Source of the DNA: Sphaerodactylus townsendi
Taxonomy: Eukaryota
Length of the DNA: 64,000 nucleotides
Assembly (NCBI RefSeq): GCF_021028975.2
Contig: NC_059432.1
Span: 50,344,001 to 50,408,000, forward strand
Reading direction: 5' to 3'
Below the pieces are notes generated by a model. That model saw nothing but the letters and a program-made list of their open reading frames with translations. It made no database searches and had not been told where the DNA came from. Positions 48,385 to 60,300 of the stretch are shown here, one piece after another. Position 1 is the first letter of the stretch. Every line of letters begins with the position of its first letter. The position numbers were made by a program, and so were the translations under genes.

Positions 48385-51300
48385 ATGCCGGTCTATTTCC
48401 AGCGGCCCGAGAACGCCCTGAAGCGGGCGAACGGTGAGTGCGGGTCTCTGTCGACCGCCGGCATCCTGGCGAAGGCCGCCTCGAAGTCCCGCCCGCCTGA
48501 GCCTTAGGATGAGTTAATGGAGGCCGAGGCCTAGGCTCGCTTGTTCCTTCCGCGCGCCCATGAGTGCAACGCCTCCCCTTCTGCCCCAGTTCTTCTTGGC
48601 GGAGAGGGGAAAACAGGTCTGACGGGGTAAACCGCCAGTCGGCCACTGGCAAGTCCTGAATAGGAGGCAAGGCTTGCCTTTGCCCGTGTTCAGTTGGAAA
48701 TTGCACGCCAGGATGGATGTGAAATATCCAACTCAACACGGGCAACAGGCAGGCCTTGCCTCCTATTCAGGACCTGCCGGCGGCCGACTGGCGCTGGAAG
48801 TCGGTGAACAGCACAACCGTACTTCGCCTGTAGACATCTGCCACAATTTAAAAAAAAGTCTGCAGCGTTAGTCTTCGATGCGTCTTGTTACTGTTGTACG
48901 TTTCCTGTCGAAAAGTCTACTTTTTCCCGACCCCAAGTTTTTTAAGTTATTTGCACCCCCCCCCTTTTAGATTTCTGATCACACAGCTTTTTCTTTTTGC
49001 TGTTGAACCCATTACATCCTTCACTTAAGTAATATTTTTTAAACTGCTAGGTGTCAGTCAAGTAGTAGGCAGCATTGAGTGGGATTGGATGTGTTTTCCA
49101 TGAGGGATACAAAACAGTAGATGAGAATGGGGAAGAAGAAAATTATGAATTGTTTGTACTTTCTATAGTATAGTTTAGTAAACAGTTATTGTTTGGCAAC
49201 TGCCTGTGATACATTTTAAAGGGGCAGTCGTTTAGACTTATCAGCTTATCAAAGGATATCTTATCGAACATCGAAGCTTATCAGAGGATGTCACTTTCCT
49301 CCTGCAATTGGGAAGTTAAGCTGTATTTCCTTAAGAACTTTAGTCGAATTTAGCGGTGATAGCCTAGTATTTAGTAAGCTCCCAGCTGTTAGACCTGACT
49401 CATTTTCCTTACTTCAATTTAAGATCCTGTTTTACTATGTGCAGCAAAATACCAGCAACATAAGATGCATGCATTAAAGCTAGTTCGGTGAAACCTAATT
49501 GCTGGTAGGAACAAGCTTTAAATATGTATCTTAAATACTTTCCCACCAAATATATGTACACAGTGTAGTTTAAAGTAGGCTATAATCATACAGTTAATAT
49601 ATAATTTTGTACTGGTGGAAGTCATAAGCAGAAGAAATTAAAGACATTTTCTGTGGGAATAATTCATCTAGAATCTGGTTCTGGTGGGTTTTCTGGGCTG
49701 TGTGGCCATGGTCTGGTGAATCTTGTTCCTAACGTTTCGCCTGCATCTGTGGCTGGCATCTTCAGAGGTGTATCACAGAGGGAACTGAGAAAAATTTTGT
49801 AAGTCTCCAAGGTGACCCTGGACTTAGTCTACTAATGGGTTAACATGACAATCTGCTCAAAACAATTAAAAATAACAAATGTTAGGTACCTAGGACCTTG
49901 ATCTTAAAGTTGATTTGGAATCTAATTTCAGTACTTCGTTAGTCAGCTTTTACCCAGGCTTTCAAGCCAAGAACGCTGACCTAGGGGCCTTGAACTTTTG
50001 GGTGGCATAACCCCGTTGAGCCCTATGGAGGACTTTCCAGGTGGCAGGGTTTTTTTTTCACCTTTTGCTTACTCCTTATGCTGCCCTGAAAGCCCTCTAC
50101 TGGAAGCAGCATAGCAAGAGATACCTTTCCCAGCAGCAAGAATTACCAACTGGAGGATATGTCTGTGAAGACCACTGGCACATGTTCCATCTTGCACTTC
50201 CAAAGGCATGGAAAATAGCAGCAACAAACATTGTGATTTAGGAATCCTTTAAAAAGCTCTGGACAGGGCTTGGGTCTGCTTATATTTTGCTACTGCAGTG
50301 TGAATTTTTATCATAGTTCCATGTAAGGGCCTCACATTGCAGTTTCTAAACATCGCCAGCCTTTTATTTCATGAAAATTGGGGCACTACTAGCATGGTTA
50401 GGTGGTTATGGACCCCTTCACTTGAACTGGAGTTTTTCGTATTGCTACTGAATTGCAGTGGCACCTCTCTGTTACTGTGGTAATATAAAAAACGGAGTAG
50501 AGGGAAAAGGTTGCAGTCAATATTTGGAATTTCCCCCGGCCCACAGAAACCTAAAAAAAAGCTTACTATTAAGTTATAAGTTGTACATTGTGTATTAATA
50601 CTTCCAGAAAGTTTAGAAATACACTTAACAAAATAAGTAATAGTAATGAAAGTAAAGTGAAGTGTGTAAGAAGAGTGGATATGGAAGTCTTAGGGGTAGG
50701 GAACCTGCGGCTCTCCAGATGTTCAGGAACTACAATTCCCATCAGCCCCTACCAGCATGGCCAATTGGCCATGCTGACAGAGGCTGATGGGAATTGTAGT
50801 TCCTGAACATCTGGAGAGCCNNNNNNNNNNNNNNNNNNNNNNNNNNNNNNNNNNNNNNNNNNNNNNNNNNNNNNNNNNNNNNNNNNNNNNNNNNNNNNNN
50901 NNNNNNNNNNNNNNNNNNNNNNNNNNNNNNNNNNNNNNNNNNNNNNNNNNNNNNNNNNNNNNNNNNNNNNNNNNNNNNNNNNNNNNNNNNNNNNNNNNNN
51001 NNNNNNNNNNNNNNNNNNNNNNNNNNNNNNNNNNNNNNNNNNNNNNNNNNNNNNNNNNNNNNNNNNNNNNNNNNNNNNNNNNNNNNNNNNNNNNNNNNNN
51101 NNNNNNNNNNNNNNNNNNNNNNNNNNNNNNNNNNNNNNNNNNNNNNNNNNNNNNNNNNNNNNNNNNNNNNNNNNNNNNNNNNNNNNNNNNNNNNNNNNNN
51201 NNNNNNNNNNNNNNNNNNNNNNNNNNNNNNNNNNNNNNNNCTCCAGATGTTCAGGAACTACAATTCCCATCAGCCTCTGTCAGCATGGCCAATTGGCCAT

Positions 51301-54300
51301 GCTGACAGAGGCTGATGGGAATTGTAGTTCCTGAACATCTGGAGAGCCGCAGGTTCCCTACCCCTGTCTTAGACGGTGTATAAATTGTTGATAGTGCTGT
51401 ACTTTCACATTTTTGACAGTTTTCTTTTATATGAAATAACTAATGTTTTATAAATGACTCCTAAATATTACTGTCTTTTGTACAAAATCCCAAATGCAGG
51501 GAAAACTTACATTTGAATCAGTAAGATGTGTGTTTTAATTTCCTTCCAAGTAAAGTTGCTATACAAGTTAAGAAAGACTAGCAGGTTTTTCAAGAACAAG
51601 AAGACATAGCTAGAGTCAGAGACTGTATTTAAGTCTAGATCTCTGAATCTTCTTGGGCACTGAAATTAACAGCGCAAGATGTTGAGAGAAGACATATACC
51701 CTTTGTTCTTTCTGCCTGTTCTGTTTTATAAGATGCAAATTAAATTATATGGATTGTTTCTGAGGGGCACTTGGAGATTCCATTGGCTGCTGAGCTACTG
51801 AATGTAACACTGGCTTTGACAGTGAGCATATGTTCACACGAGACGGAAATAATCTGTAGCACTTCAGTGATTTTAAAAAACCCTGCTAAGACAGCAAGAA
51901 ATAAATTTCCTTGCTCAGGATGCATCAGCCGTATTGCAAATTTGGCCAAATCTTCCTAAAAACTTAACACTTTCACAATAGTTGCTTTATGTTTCTTTGA
52001 TTGTAACTCTTAGTTTCTTTAAGCTCCGCCAGACTAAGAAAATTCTATTCCTCAGTTTTTAATTCAATCGTGTTCTGTCTAGCAGTTTGAAATGTATAGA
52101 AATGATGATGTTTCTAATGTTTGAAATGATTAGTCTGAAATGAGGCTTCAAATGATGGTTTACCACAAAAATGGGTATTGTGGAAAGAAAGACATCTCAG
52201 TGTGGCTGACTGCACCCCCCCCCCCCCCCCCAAAGGATGACTTTCTTAATAGGGAATACGTAGTTCTGAAGAATCATTCTCTTACAGAATGGCTTCCCAA
52301 CTGTCCATATATTCACATGCTTCAGGTTTGAAATAATCCTCCAGATGGCTTGGATGCCGACTGGAGTTTCCATACATGCAAGAATTTCTACCCAGTGGAG
52401 TGTCAATTTTCCTGCCTTCTCCCACCCAAACATCAAACGCCCCACAAAATCCTGTTCATGGGGAAAATCGTACCCTCCTGGTAGCTAAATGTTAAACTAT
52501 ATTCAATGTTAGTCTGTTTAACCCTCATTTATGCTTTGAGGTTGCAAAGCAGGACACAGTGTAGCTCAGAACACAACTCCAGTAGAAGGAGCACCTATGA
52601 GCAGGAGCTAAAAGGAGTGGGAGAAGGGTCACTGGACCAGGGAATGGTTGTTTGTCCACGTCATAGAGAATTTGGAATGCTATGGTGTTTTTTTGCAGCC
52701 TTGCGAGTTTTTGTGCAAGTTTGAAAAAGTTTGTGACCTACTAATATCCTTCAAAGAATAAATTGTAGTTTAGAAAAGTTTTCTCATCTGGCTATCTGAA
52801 GGTGTCTCTTGCTTTCCACTTACAACTAGGTGAGTGGCCTCAATTTGATCATAGCACCCCTCCCAATTATAATGCATTTTCAGTTTAAAGTAGATACTTG
52901 TTCTAATCTATGTCATAGAGGGGAAGAATGTTATATGGCATTCTTGGTCCTAATTAGAGTGGGGCATAAATTAAGTAAATGAATAATAATTAAAATATTT
53001 AGAACTCTCTTTAATCAGTTTTTTTCTCCTCCAGAATTTCTTGAGGTTGGGAAGAAGCAACCTGCCCTTGATGTTCTCTATGATGTTATGAAAAGTAAAA
53101 AACACCGAACATGGCAAAAGATCCACGAGCCGATTATGCTGAAGTACCTAGAACTCTGTGTGGACCTCCGCAAGAGCCATCTGGCAAAAGAAGGGTTATA
53201 TCAGTACAAGAATATCTGCCAACAGGTAGAGGACTTCAAAAGTTCTGTTAACAACAGGAGGTTAATAAGATCAATATTTGTAGAAGCAGTAGAAAAATGT
53301 TCATGATGGTCCTTAACTGTATATGAGATTTGTCTGTAAAACGCCTCAGGTTGATCAGACATGTTCAGCAATTGATTTTTAATATCAATTGGTTTCTTAG
53401 TATATCTGAATTATAGAAACAGTGATGTATTTGTGTTCAGATCTATCACTACTTTTTACTACTACATTTTGAGTTTCCCAGTTAAAATACTGACTCTCAT
53501 GTCTAGGCAAACCCACCTACCTCACAGGGTGTTTGTTGTGAGGGGGGAAGGGAAAGGAGTTTGTAAGCCCTTTTGAGTCTCCTATAGGAGAGAAAGGGGG
53601 GATATAAATCCAACTCCTCTTATAAGCCCCTTTGAGTCTCCTATAGGAGAGAAAGGGGGGATATAAATCCAACTCCTCCTATAAATCCAACTCCTCCTCC
53701 TCCTTCTTAATTGTTCCAATTCTGTTATAGGTGAACATCAAATCCTTGGAAGATGTAGTTCGAGCCTATTTAAAACTAGCAGAAGAAAAAACTGAAGCTG
53801 CCAAAGAAGAATCTCAGCAGATGGTGCTGGATATAGAAGATTTAGATAATATTCAGACTCCAGAGAGGTAGGAATCTGTGTTTTTTGGTATGGGGATTAT
53901 TTTTAACTTTAAGAAATAATGTGCTTGTTCGGGAAGAAGGTTGGCTAGCTGAGTTGTATGCTGAGGTTCCACAAAATGAAAACATTAACCAGAACCAATT
54001 CCAACATTCTAAATCTATACCATTTGCTGTGAAGTCCATAACAGGCCTACCTGAAGCTATTGTTATATCTCCATAACTCTGAAAGAAACTTTCAAAATAT
54101 GCTGTCTGTATAAATGAATTTATTTAGGGTTGTGCCAAAGGCAGTAACAACAAGCACCGTACGGCAGCAGATAACAAACAACATGCAGCATAGCATAAAG
54201 TTCGATGGAATAATAATACAACGACAGTATAGATTGTAACAATACTCAAAACCTGTTGGATATCAAATAAAGCACTAAAATAATAAACCATGAACTGAAC

Positions 54301-57300
54301 ATGACTAAAATCTCATCTGAGATAGGTTATCCTAAAAGTTCTCTAAAATGTTTAAGTAACAAATTTCTTATAGCAAGAGATAAAAAGGCAAAAATAGCAA
54401 CTTTAAAAGTAATTGAAGGAGTAGCATCTACCAGAAGAAACTGAATTCGATCCTCATCAGTACCATGAAAATTTGCCACATCTGGAAACAATCTCACATA
54501 TATTGTCATACATCAGGCAGCATATGATATAATGAATAATGTCTTTGATCTTTTAGAACATCATGGGCAAAACCTCAGTTCCATAGGTACTTTTTAAATC
54601 TCCCCTGTAGAAATGCAGAGGGCATTGTTTGAAATCTTATACTTGTAAAGGCTTTCCTTAGAGCAGCATTTATGAGGTTTGTTAAATAACAGGAGAACAT
54701 TTATTTTAAGTTGTGTTTACCACATTGAGAAATTTGATGCATCCTTCTCAGCCATTTACAAATATTTTTGGAATCCCATTTTTTTAACAATTCAGTAGAA
54801 GGTAATGATATGTTTGGAATATGGGTATCAGCAAGTGAACCTATTGGTTCCTTTCCCCATAAAACCAAAATCCATACTTGACTAAGTGAGTATCCAAAAT
54901 ATTTTCCACTGAATACAATATTTTGATAGTCTTAGATACGCCCTCATACAGATTGATGGTAAACCTACTTCTGTTCTTCAGTGGATGGCAGGTATTTCAT
55001 GTGGGAGATCAAGAATTTTCCTTCTAAAGATATTTTAAATTATATCCAGCTTATCCAGGATCATCCTCTTCCATCCCCAAACCTCCTCACCATACAGGAG
55101 CTGAGGGATAATTTTGCCCTGGAATGCTTTGAAAGCTGGGGCTATAAATTGTTCCCCTTTAGTATGGAAAAATTTCAATAAGGCTCCCATCGTATGGTGT
55201 GCTGTTGTGAGGCTGGCTTTCAGATGGCCATGAAATGTCATACCAAGAAATTTAAAGGATGTTAGGGTGATCTAGCTGCAACTTCTGTCACCCCATTGAT
55301 CACCAGGATTGATTTGGTTGATCTGGCTGGCTAGGCAGGTGTCCCCCACCTCCCTCACCGCTCCATGTGTGTCTCTCGTAAAGCTGCTCGCTTGGTGGAA
55401 GAGGACGACCATCCCAGATAGAAGGAGTGTACTGTTCTTCGATCTGGGATATACAATAGCAATATGATGTAGTGTACTGCGTTGTGGTACTTTATGCACA
55501 TATTTGGAAGCAAAAACAATTGATTTTATGGCTTAAGATATTCTTTTTATTCCTTAACTAGTGTTCTCCTAAGTGCTGTAAGTGGGGAAGACACTCAAGA
55601 TCGTACTGATCGGCTACTTCTGACACCTTGGGTTAAATTTCTATGGGAGTCATACAGGCAATGCCTGGATCTTCTTAGAAACAATTCTAGAGTGGAGCGC
55701 CTCTACCATGATATTGCACAGCAAGGTAAAATTGGAATTACTGTGAAACTTATGCAGCCTTTTTAAAAGTGGGGGTTTAAAAGATTTGGCTCTTGGAACT
55801 ATTGCTTAATTATTTTATACACAGACACATATATAAAAGTAATTGATCAGGTGATGGGTGAACCAAAACTTTAAAAAAATCAAAACCTTATTATTTTAGG
55901 AATTTTTCAAAATTAAAATTTAATTCTAATTTTTAAATTATAATAATGCATGCCTTTTCTCTACTATTTCAAAAATAGTGCAAGTTTTTTTAAAAACAAG
56001 ATGTTTTGAGAAATGATACTTGCTTTTTTCAGTATGTCATACTATTGTTTCAGCTGTTAAAGTATTTAATATTTGGAATAATTAATTCTTGCAGCTTTCA
56101 AGTTCTGTTTGCAGTATACTCGTAAGGCTGAATTTCGCAAACTCTGTGACAATCTGAGAATGCATTTGGGTCAGATTCAGCGACATCACAATCAAAGTAC
56201 AGCCATCAATCTCAATAATCCTGAAAGTCAGTCAATGCACTTGGAAACCAGGCTTGTACAGCTGGACAGTGCTATCAGCATGGAACTGTGGCAGGTGTGT
56301 GTTTTTGGCAATGACATATATTTCCTTGTGTCTTGTTAACTGTAAAGTCTGTTTTCATGCTTTATAAGACCCAGTAACTAAGAGAACTTTGCAAGTGAGT
56401 TCATTTTATAGCATAACCCTAAACACAGTTTAATATAAGATTATTTATAGGAATTTACAAATAAGCATGCTTAGATGTTAGTAAACTTGCATCATGTCAT
56501 TTTTTGCCTTCTCCAACCACCACTCCAACTGTCAAGCAATTTCCCCCCCTTTCAGGAAGCCTTCAAAGCAGTGGAGGATATACATGGACTCTTCTCCTTG
56601 TCCAAAAAACCTCCCAAGCCGCAACTGATGGCAAATTATTACCACAAAGTTTCTACTGTATTCTGGAAATCAGGAAATGCACTTTTTCATGCTTCCACAC
56701 TTCATCGTCTTTACCATCTCTCAAGGGAAATGCGAAAGAATCTTACGCAGGAGGAAATGCAGAGGTGGGCAAATGTTTGTGTGTGGGGTTGTTATTTATA
56801 ATAGTACCCATGTTATAGTATGAACAGCCCAAATATCCCAGTTTGGCTAAGTAAGCTTGGTCATGGTCAGTACTTTGATGGGAGATCAACAACAAAGACT
56901 CTGGTTGCTATGCAGAAGAAGGCAATGGGAAACCATCTCTGCTCACCTTGTGCCTTGAACACCCCATGATTGGGGTCACTGTGAATCTGCTGTGACTGGA
57001 CAGCATGTTCTGATGTTACTGTATATTGAAATCATTCTAAATTTCTAAACATCTTTTTAAGTTTGGCATCTCGAATGATGAGGAGGCTTGCAGGTCAATC
57101 CTAAAAGCAATTGCGTAGATCCAATAGGCAGACACACTATTTTAGATCTACTTCTCACCAGTAATGATGACCTGATTAGTGGAGTGGAAGTGGTAGGATC
57201 CTTAGGTGGGAGTGATCATGCTGTCCTGGAGTTTGTTATACAATGAAAAGGGGATACTAAGTGTAGTCAGACCTACATCCTAGAGTTTAAGAAAGCAGAC

Positions 57301-60300
57301 TTCAGTAAGCTTAGGAAACCACTGGGTGTGAACCAGTAGTTCAAAATACTAAGACAGAAGGGAGTGCATGATTGATGAATTTCTTAAAAGTGAGATCTTG
57401 AAGGCACAATTTGAAACTATTCCAGTGAGGTGGAAAAATAGGAGGTGTTCTAAGGAAACCAGGACGGATGTCTAAAGAACTTTCAGCTGAGCTAAGATTT
57501 AAAAAGGACATGTATAAGAAATGGAAAAGGGGAGAAATCACCAAAGAGTAATTCAAACAAATAGTGAGGACATGTAGGGAGAAAGTCAGAAAAGCTAAAG
57601 TTCACAGTGAGCTCAGGCTTGCCAGAGAGGTTGAAAACAACAAAAAATACTTTTTTGGGTATGTCTGTAGAAAAAGGGTAAGAAAAGGTAGGATAGAGTC
57701 ACTGAATGGAGAAAATGGCAAAATGCTAACGGGATGGAGAAAAGACAGAACCTACTTAACATCTTCTTTGCCTCGGTTTTTCTCAAAAATAAAACAGTTC
57801 TCATCCAGGGGAAAATGGAACAGAAGATTCTGTAGGGGAAATTCAGCACAGAATAAATAAAGAGGTAGTGCAGGAATATCTGGATACCTTAAATTATTTC
57901 AAATCTCCAGGCCCTGATAAGCTACATCCCAGGGTATTAAAAGAATGGGCAGAAGTATTCTTTGAGAACTCCTGGAGAACAGGAGATGTCCCAGTGGGCT
58001 GGGGAGGGCTAATGTTATTCACATCTTCAAAAAGTGGAAAAAAGAGGACCCAAACAATGTCTGTCCAGTCAGCCTGATATCAGTACCAGGAAAGATTCTG
58101 GAGCAGATAATCAGACAGTATTAAGCACTTAGAAGGGAACAGTATGATCACTAAAAGTTAACAAGGGTTTCTCAAAACCAAATCATGCTGGAGTAATCTC
58201 ATCTCTTTTTTGATAAAGTGACACACTTGGTAGACAAAGGGAATGCTGTTGATATAGTATACCTAGATTTTAGTAAAGCCTTTGATAAGGTGACCCGTGA
58301 CATTCTTGCAAGTAAGCTAGTAAAATGTGGACTGGACAGTGCCACTGCTAGATGGATTTGCAATTAGTTGACTGACCGAACCCAAAGGTGCTCATCAATG
58401 GCTCATCTTCATCCTGGAGAGAAGTGACTAGTGGGGTGCCACAGGGTTCTGTCCTGGGCCCAGTGCTATTCAATATTTTTTATCAGTGACTTGGATGATG
58501 AAATGGAGGGCATGCTAATCATATTTGCAGATGACACCAAATTAGGAGGAGTAGCTAATACCCCAGAGGACAGAGACAGGAATCAAAATGACCTGGACAG
58601 GTTAGAGAGATGGGCCAAAGCTAACAAAATGAACTTCAACAGAGATAAATGTAAGATATTCCACTCAGACAGAAAATTTTAAATGCACAGATATAGGATG
58701 GGTGACACCTGATTTGACAACAGTGCATGTGAAAGGAATCTGAGAGTCTTAGTAGACCACACGAGTCAGCAGTATGATGCAGCTGCCAAGAAAGCCTATT
58801 CATCAGTAGGAGTATAGTGTCTAGATCAAGGGACGTAATAGTACCTCTCTATTCTGCATTGGTCAGACCTCACCTCGAATATTGTGTTCAGTTCTGGACA
58901 CCGCAATTCAAGAAGGATATTGACAAACTGGATTGGGTCCAGAGGAGGGCGACCAAAATGGTAAAAGTTCTGGAATCCATGCCCTATGAGGAGAGACTTA
59001 GGGAGCTGGTTATGTTTAGTTTGGTTAAGAGAAGGTTAAGGGGTGACATGATAGCCATGTTTAAATATTTGAAGGGATGTCACATCGAAGAGGGAGCAAG
59101 CTTGTTTTCTGTTGCTCCAGATATTAGGACAAGGAATCATGGGTTCAAGTTGCAGGAAAAAAGATTCCATCTAAACATTAGAAGGAACTTCTTAACAGGG
59201 CTATACTTCCTCTGAGTGTAGTGGAGGTTTTTAAACAGAGTCTGGATGGCCATCTGTCAGGGGTGCTTTGATTGTGTGTTCCTGCATTGCAGGGGGTTGG
59301 ATTTGATGGCCCTTGTGGTCCCTTCCAACTCTATGATTCTATGACCTATTTGGGATTGTATGGGTGATGATGTGAAAGTGATGTGAAAGAGGAAAAGTCG
59401 ATCATAAATGAAGCAATGCTATACTTACTTTGTTTCTCCAATCTTTTATTGGCAGGATGTCAACAAGAGTCCTCTTGGCCACTCTGTCAATCCCAATAAC
59501 TCCAGAGCGAACTGACATTGCTCGTCTTTTGGACATGGATGGCATAATTGTTGAAAAGCAAAGGCGGTTAGCAACGCTCCTGGGACTTCAGGCTCCTCCT
59601 ACACGAATCTCTCTCATTAATGACATGGTAGTAATATTTAGAAAGTAACTTTTAGATCATTTATGTCCTTGATCAAAAGTTGCATGAATGACACTTGGAA
59701 GTACTGAATAATATTCTGATAACTACCAAATATTAGTAAAAGCTATTGGTTTCTTTAGTTCTCTCTGCTTCTACTTTGTCTTTGTAATTGCAGTCTCTAA
59801 GGGATGCTTTGCTAGTTAGAACTAGAGCTATTCATGTCCAAGGGGACATAAGTTATGACTTGCATTGCTTCCGCAAGCAATCTAACAAAGGTGACATTCT
59901 GCACATTGTTGCAGCTGAAGAAGCATGGCCCCATCATGATGCTTGCAAAACTATTCCTTAAATATTAATTGGCTAAATTATTTGCTTAAAACAAAACTTG
60001 GTGATATCAGCATTGCAGTAATGCTGTCTAGCAGTCTTCTTGAACTTAACAAAATAACAACTTCCATAATATTTCTTCATAGGTGAGATTCAATGTTGTA
60101 CAGTATGTTGTCCCGGATGTGAAAGAACTTTATAACTGGCTGGAAGTAGATTTTCACCCACTGAAGTTATGTGGTCGTGTTTGTAAGGTAAATGGAGGAC
60201 TTCCATTTCACTTGTATGTAGTCCTTTTTGAAATTGTTGGTTGGGACACTGTGCTTTTCCATAATCATTTTTTTTTCTCTGAGGTTGTTCTTTAAAAGAG

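Follow-up and report, generated by a model that had tools for sequence, protein, structure and literature searches.

The stretch of DNA analysed here (the window) comprises 64,000 nucleotides (nt) of the squamate Sphaerodactylus townsendi (NCBI RefSeq assembly GCF_021028975.2, contig NC_059432.1, positions 50,344,001 to 50,408,000 of the forward strand; coordinates below are those of the window) and contains exons of EIF3A on the + strand. One intron of this gene, at 53869-55560 (1,692 nt), holds a chimeric unit of 1,365 nt in which the 3' part of a decayed long interspersed element (LINE) on the - strand and the 5' part of a 7SK RNA retrocopy on the + strand are joined head to head and enclosed by a short direct repeat, taken here as a target-site duplication (TSD). 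The order on the + strand is TSD, antisense LINE 3' part, sense 7SK nt 1-202, TSD; read in the orientation of the LINE, this becomes TSD, an inverted segment whose RNA-3' end lies at the TSD, the junction, the direct LINE 3' segment, its tail, and the other TSD copy. Here, we delimit the two parts of this unit, examine the repeat that surrounds them, and argue from sequence comparison that the unit probably arose in a single retrotransposition, during which a non-L1, microsatellite-tailed LINE was primed first and 7SK RNA was copied from the second nick in the target, that is, by twin priming in trans.

The chimeric unit and its parts

The LINE part, 5'-truncated and decayed, occupies 54111-55256 on the - strand. 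Translation of the minus-strand frame that begins at 55256 yields part of the product of LINE open reading frame 2 (ORF2), with three stops in the first 125 codons, and the retained sequence comprises the C-terminal part of ORF2, which opens with the (F/Y)KYLG motif that closes the reverse transcriptase (RT) domain and continues through a CCHC-like region, followed by the 3' untranslated region and the 3' terminus of the element. A full-library phmmer search with the first piece of this translation, 73 amino acids (aa) in length, returned 30 proteins at E<=0.001 (best 7.6e-13); the long matches carry Exo_endo_phos and RVT_1 domains, and the named matches are from Podarcis muralis and Anolis carolinensis. 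When six relatives were aligned to the window with tblastn, homology extended on the minus strand from 55262 to 54578, with E values of 1e-23 to 1e-25. Translation, phmmer and tblastn thus agree with the preliminary description of this locus, which had followed the RT motif of a minus-strand LINE up to 55256. In the relative P0002 the RVT_1 domain spans residues 522-776 and the match to the window covers residues 769-845; because the match begins where RVT_1 ends, we conclude that the LINE is truncated at the (F/Y)KYLG motif. The break falls at about residue 768-769 of P0002, directly against nt 1 of 7SK.

Homology assigns this element to the apurinic/apyrimidinic endonuclease (APE)-type LINEs, although all that the window copy retains lies downstream of the RT, and places it outside the L1 clade. 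The nearest full-length relative, L001, is an ENA contig of 5,680 bp with an ORF1 of 468 aa and an ORF2 of 1,098 aa, and the relatives end in (TAC)n, not in poly(A). In a comparison with solved structures, P0002 matched human L1 ORF2p over the RT region only (1e-31), the endonuclease reaching only 6e-4, and on this ground, together with the (TAC)n ends of the relatives, membership in the L1 clade is denied to the element. The label 'RTEX-like', which the preliminary description had used, is possible: a sizeable ORF1 protein distinguishes RTEX elements from BovB/RTE (PMC3905857), and the 468-aa ORF1 of L001 fits this description without being diagnostic of it. The two-ORF structure of L001 had been entertained as an argument against an 'RTE-like' assignment, and was dropped because RTEX has a sizeable ORF1 as well. 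A search of L001 ORF1 for an esterase domain found none, Pfam and the ESM Atlas gave no clade information for the LINE pieces or for P0002, and a word-index protein search with P0002 returned no informative names, the matches that bear a name being called 'reverse transcriptase' and no more. One further relative, P0003 (UniRef A0A670KKD3, Podarcis muralis), matches the LINE family over its N-terminal two thirds and bears at its C-terminus an L1-like CWRGC...H..WW.CP motif that is absent in the other relatives; it looks like a fused gene model.

The 7SK part occupies 55257-55460 on the + strand. A cmscan search of Rfam aligned the 7SK model (RF00100) from 55257, which corresponds to model nt 1, and scored 161.2 bits over 55257-55539 against a gathering score of 35. 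Scanned by itself, 55257-55460 gave 156.1 bits for model positions 1-202, and the 160 nt that follow (55461-55620), also scanned by themselves, gave no 7SK match even at E<=10. Since nt 1-202 carry 156 of the 161 bits and the following segment has no 7SK match, the copy is 3'-truncated at nt 202; the 3' portion of the longer alignment is forced, and enters the polypyrimidine tract of the next 3' splice site. These figures also led us to reject a full-length 7SK copy with an internal deletion, in which the right copy of the TSD would lie inside 7SK. By hand count, the retrocopy differs from the Rfam cross-species consensus by ~34 substitutions and 3 indels in 202 positions, and this identity of ~83% indicates that it is old. 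LINE coding sequence abuts nt 1, leaving no upstream Pol III promoter, and the copy has no A-tail and is missing the 3' 129 nt of the RNA. A copy that starts at the first nt of the transcript, without a promoter and incomplete at its 3' end, is derived from RNA rather than from a 7SK gene. In the Rfam structure line, positions 172-200 of 7SK are unpaired and a helix begins at 201-202, so that the truncation coincides with the point at which a single-stranded linker ends on its 3' side. With respect to EIF3A the fragment reads in sense, and every pre-mRNA of the gene consequently carries a decayed 7SK 5' hairpin region; many of its paired positions are broken, and no function is suggested.

At the junction of the two parts, read on the + strand, the LINE sequence ...ACCAAGAAATTTAAA is followed immediately by the 7SK sequence GGATGTTAGGG, with neither spacer nor filler. 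That 7SK begins at 55257 with its first nt, on the strand opposite to the LINE and without a spacer, had been noted from the letters alone; cmscan and the extent of the LINE bear this out, with an ambiguity of at most 2 nt (TC) between LINE and 7SK when the same codons are compared in the DNA of L001 and of a second relative, L002. The sequence is continuous across all junctions of the unit. The preliminary description had also named a resumption of the LINE past the 7SK piece as an observation that would speak against a single event; tblastn with the six relatives found no LINE homology on the minus strand beyond 55460. One candidate for such a resumption, an RT fragment on the + strand at 57984-58748, proved to be a different element that lies past the next exon. 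This fragment is unrelated and more divergent (22-27% identity to the same relatives), represents the N-terminal part of RVT_1, and is situated in a downstream EIF3A intron, outside the chimera.

The 3' end of the LINE can be placed independently of the flanking repeat. Alignment of the conserved 3' terminus of the window copy (54111-54150, -) with the 3' ends of L001 (5530-5573) and L002 (1915-1947) revealed a short hairpin of 4-5 bp that is common to all three. The hairpin reads GGCC-NNN-GGCC in L001 and L002; in the window copy it has become TGCC-TTT-GGCA, both sides having changed with pairing kept (GGCC...GGCC to TGCC...GGCA). The hairpin is followed in all three by AAATAAATT, and then, in L001 and L002, by a (TAC)3-4 tail beyond which the flanking sequences diverge. 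From this alignment the LINE ends at about 54111-54108 in the window, where the last GTA of the left TSD copy overlaps the first TAC unit of the tail. A structured 3' end together with a microsatellite tail is typical of stringent-type LINEs, whose reverse transcriptase recognizes the structure and the microsatellite at the 3' end of the element and not poly(A).

The repeat that encloses the unit consists of a left copy, AATATGCTGTCTGTA (54096-54110), and a right copy, AATATGATGTAGTGTA (55461-55476), of 15 and 16 nt, respectively, which align with 13 matches, two mismatches, and one gap. Both copies had been pointed out in the preliminary description at these positions, and both are present. 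When 45-nt windows are aligned locally without anchoring, the repeat does not stand out (p about 0.08-0.09). We therefore give weight to an anchored test, in which the LINE 3' end has to coincide with the end of the left copy, and the 7SK 3' end with the start of the right copy. The score of 9 obtained in this test compares with a null mean of 3.7-3.9, and was reached by one in 400 random placements when the anchors were allowed to move by +-3 nt and by three in 500 when the left anchor was allowed +-6 nt (p = 0.0025-0.006). The same anchored test gave no indication of separate TSDs, the LINE alone scoring 3 and 7SK alone scoring 4, which is the null level. An identity of 13/16 between the two copies fits the ~15% decay of the 7SK part.

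The right TSD copy ends in ATGTAGTGTA, which a single edit would turn into (GTA)3, and (GTA)3 is complementary to the (TAC)n tail of the relatives; only 24 of 127,102 window positions, counted on both strands, come equally close. This near-(GTA)3 end marks the right copy as the likely duplicate of the site at which the LINE was primed, even though it now lies 1.36 kb from the LINE tail.

Origin of the unit

Four observations favor one event over several: the anchored TSD statistics, the null-level scores for separate TSDs, the lack of LINE homology beyond 7SK, and the (GTA)n-like end of the right TSD copy. On the strength of these sequence comparisons, a one-event inverted chimera is well supported, although not proven. 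In the mechanism that we propose, the LINE endonuclease would nick the + strand after ...GATGTAGTGTA, and the 3' end so exposed would anneal to the (UAC)n tail of the LINE RNA, priming a first-strand cDNA that would halt within ORF2, where the RT domain ends. It is the (GTA)n-like nick site that suggests the LINE, and not 7SK, as the primary template at the first nick. A second nick in the - strand, 15-16 nt to the left, would free another 3'-OH, and the reverse transcriptase would extend this end on 7SK RNA from nt 202 to the 5' end (nt 1). The two cDNA ends would then be joined with 0-2 nt of microhomology, and fill-in of the overhangs would generate the TSD. The boundaries and the repeat are read directly from the DNA; from them we infer the order of events and the role of the second nick as a primer. 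A 5'-to-5' joining of this kind, by twin priming in trans in one event, was the central proposal of the preliminary description, and the architecture, the anchored TSD and the (GTA)n-like end lend it support short of proof. The accompanying claim that priming occurred near nt 200 of 7SK agrees in position with the truncation at nt 202, which would be the point of annealing.

Several facts weigh against this account of a single, twin-primed event. The left TSD copy, which is the one beside the LINE tail, is (GTA)n-like only in its last 3 nt. This asymmetry between the left and right copies is a weakness, yet three changes in 16 nt are within expectation for an insertion of such age. Complementarity between the second primer (...CATATT-3') and 7SK past nt 202 is conjectural, and no duplication-free register is evident in the sequence. 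Evidence for a (TAC)n tail comes from relatives of 44-49% protein identity and not from the family of the window copy itself, and a search for a TSD around L001 found none. A comparison of the divergence of the two parts from their sources, which had been suggested as a check, produced only crude agreement in age: three stops in 125 LINE codons suggest roughly 4-56% divergence, as against at most 17% for 7SK, the latter measured from a cross-species consensus.

An origin in two separate insertions would have a 3'-truncated 7SK pseudogene arrive first, with its own 15-16-nt TSD, and a (TAC)n-tailed LINE enter later, at the very point where the left TSD copy met 7SK nt 1 and without forming a TSD of its own. 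In that case the left TSD copy would have ended in GTAGTGTA, a good match to the LINE tail, and such a (GTA)n-like site would attract the LINE; the likeness of an unrelated 7SK TSD to the complement of the LINE tail would, however, have to be a coincidence, one expected at about 2 in 10,000 positions. The ingredients of this scenario are ordinary enough, in that small-RNA pseudogenes that are truncated at the 3' end and carry TSDs are common (among 41 lizard U6 copies analysed, 25 are of that kind) and non-L1 LINEs often have short TSDs or none (1-9 bp in platypus L2 chimeras; both PMC4476161), but their combination requires a nick at one exact phosphodiester bond followed by blunt integration. 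Had the second nick been staggered, the repeat would occur a third time, between LINE and 7SK, and it does not. Moreover, the head-to-head geometry recurs at independent human loci, for which single events have been inferred from multi-species alignments (PMC13174262), and we judge two insertions to be an unlikely history for the EIF3A unit. A target-specific insertion of the LINE into a 7SK gene was considered as well and rejected: it is the precise 3' end of the LINE that abuts the unrelated intron, and the variable, truncated 5' end that meets 7SK.

A single event might also have proceeded without priming from the second nick, if a piece of 7SK, either a free cDNA or an RNA fragment, with its end near nt 202 had been end-joined as 5' filler, or if the reverse transcriptase had switched from the LINE RNA onto an antisense 7SK cDNA. 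Either course would account for the topology and the TSD equally well, and the want of demonstrated complementarity between primer and 7SK at nt 202 counts in its favor, as does the suggestion that processed RNA fragments (tRNA halves, 5S fragments) are substrates for antisense chimeras (PMC13174262). Both courses nevertheless call for an extra, unanchored cDNA species, whereas the 3' end of 7SK meets the TSD without filler, as expected if a 3'-OH of the target had served as primer; for such geometry both PMC13174262 and PMC4476161 adopt twin priming, and we hold an event of this other kind to be improbable. An assembly artefact, or a chance juxtaposition of parts without shared history, is by a wide measure harder to credit. 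Nothing specific speaks for it, the one 420-N gap in the window being ~3 kb away; the sequence is unbroken at all junctions, and the places where the parts meet make biological sense (7SK nt 1, the LINE 3' terminus, and the TSD). The possibility that the unit belongs to a repeated composite family within the window was ruled out, as neither the LINE part nor the 7SK part has a second copy there.

Host intron and neighboring sequences

The exons on either side of the host intron were identified by peptide landmarks in + strand frames. The upstream exon (VNIKSLED...NIQTPE), at 53731-53868 on the + strand, is the 5' neighbor of the intron and is probably exon 3. The downstream exon (...YHDIAQQ) occupies 55561-55727 on the + strand, and the end of the insertion lies ~85 nt 5' of its 3' splice site. 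Without the unit, and with one copy of the repeat retained, the intron would measure about 326 nt; insertion has quintupled its length. Exon 1 of EIF3A was not located by peptide landmarks in the window, and may fall in or near a stretch of 420 N at 50821-51240. This masked or gap stretch is bracketed by two near-perfect palindromic hairpins of ~94 nt, at 50718-50811 and 51246-51339. On both strands these give sub-threshold matches to several microRNA families, among them mir-5408 and mir-5444, with 42-56 bits where the gathering scores are 70-96. The hairpins look like copies of a foldback repeat resembling a miniature inverted-repeat transposable element.

Relation to known chimeras

The EIF3A unit has the features of inverted chimeras of the twin-priming type: its parts lie in opposite orientation with their 5' ends facing, no spacer separates them, and one TSD surrounds the pair. 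Twin priming in cis by L1 (Ostertag and Kazazian 2001, as cited in PMC13174262 and PMC4476161) involves two RT reactions from both ends of a staggered break. As it is presented in those two papers, its products resemble the EIF3A unit in their inverted segments, joined cDNA 3' ends and single TSD, and differ from it in that the second template is an internal part of the same LINE RNA, where here it would be a different RNA.

Small RNAs have been found in such arrangements before. Doucet et al. 2015 (PMC4476161) described copies of U5, U1, U2, and one of U6 that are 3'-truncated and lie, within one TSD, in the opposite orientation to a 5'-truncated L1. The authors explained these small nuclear RNA (snRNA) chimeras by twin priming; the truncations fall in a single-stranded loop, and the snRNA and the insertion site show complementarity. 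The unit described here shares with them the inversion relative to a 5'-truncated LINE, a 3' truncation of the internal-initiation kind in a single-stranded region (here the linker 172-200), and the single TSD. The partners differ, being human L1 and spliceosomal snRNAs with complementarity to the site in their case, and a non-L1 LINE and 7SK in ours. The same study reported chimeras from Anolis in which U6, in sense orientation, is joined to L1, L2, or RTEX-2 LINEs. These are alike in that non-L1 squamate LINEs co-mobilized a small nuclear RNA in one event, but they are template-switch products in which both parts have the same orientation, whereas the EIF3A unit is inverted and contains 7SK.

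The closest counterparts are human. A study in Cell Genomics 2026 (PMC13174262) described antisense chimeras of 5S, U5, and tRNA with L1 and ascribed the antisense bias to twin priming; its Table S3 newly lists four 7SK/L1 chimeras, three of which are head-to-head with 7SK antisense. At these three human loci, the 7SK copy begins, by RepeatMasker, with nt 10-15 at the L1 5' end, is 3'-truncated at nt 235-238, has no A-tail, and is accompanied by a TSD of 7-9 bp. Antisense 7SK, its 5' end at the truncated 5' end of the LINE, the 3' truncation, the missing A-tail, and the flanking TSD are common to the human chimeras and to the EIF3A unit. The two differ in partner and host (L1 and human there; here a non-L1 LINE with (TAC)n-tailed relatives and a squamate), in the point of truncation (nt 202 here), in the length of the TSD (15-16 nt here), and in the putative nick site, which is GTA/C here and not the L1 TTTT/AA motif.

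Both the mechanism and the RNA partner are thus already published for human L1. The preliminary description had treated the inverted capture of a cellular RNA as unestablished, and in this it must be corrected: such capture was proposed in PMC4476161, and three human 7SK/L1 cases are given in PMC13174262. What is new here is the squamate host and the non-L1 LINE with a microsatellite tail. A limited literature search, which is not proof of absence, found this architecture neither in a squamate nor with a non-L1 microsatellite-tailed LINE.

For EIF3A itself, the chimera is an old, decayed, and inert intronic insertion that lengthened the intron. Its wider bearing is that it adds a microsatellite-tailed, non-L1 LINE of a squamate to human L1 as a partner in the antisense small-RNA/LINE chimeras that have been ascribed to twin priming. 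We offer as a tentative possibility, to which we would give somewhat less than an even chance, that squamate non-L1 LINEs of the stringent type routinely reverse-transcribe abundant nuclear small RNAs, such as 7SK here, from the second nick, and that twin priming in trans is general rather than L1-specific. If the event described here proves recurrent, second-strand priming on foreign RNAs would be independent of features specific to L1, such as poly(A)/T-rich priming, and would bear on second-strand synthesis in LINE integration generally. Were twin priming in trans general, chimeras of this sort might also be used to mark single events of LINE activity in reptiles.

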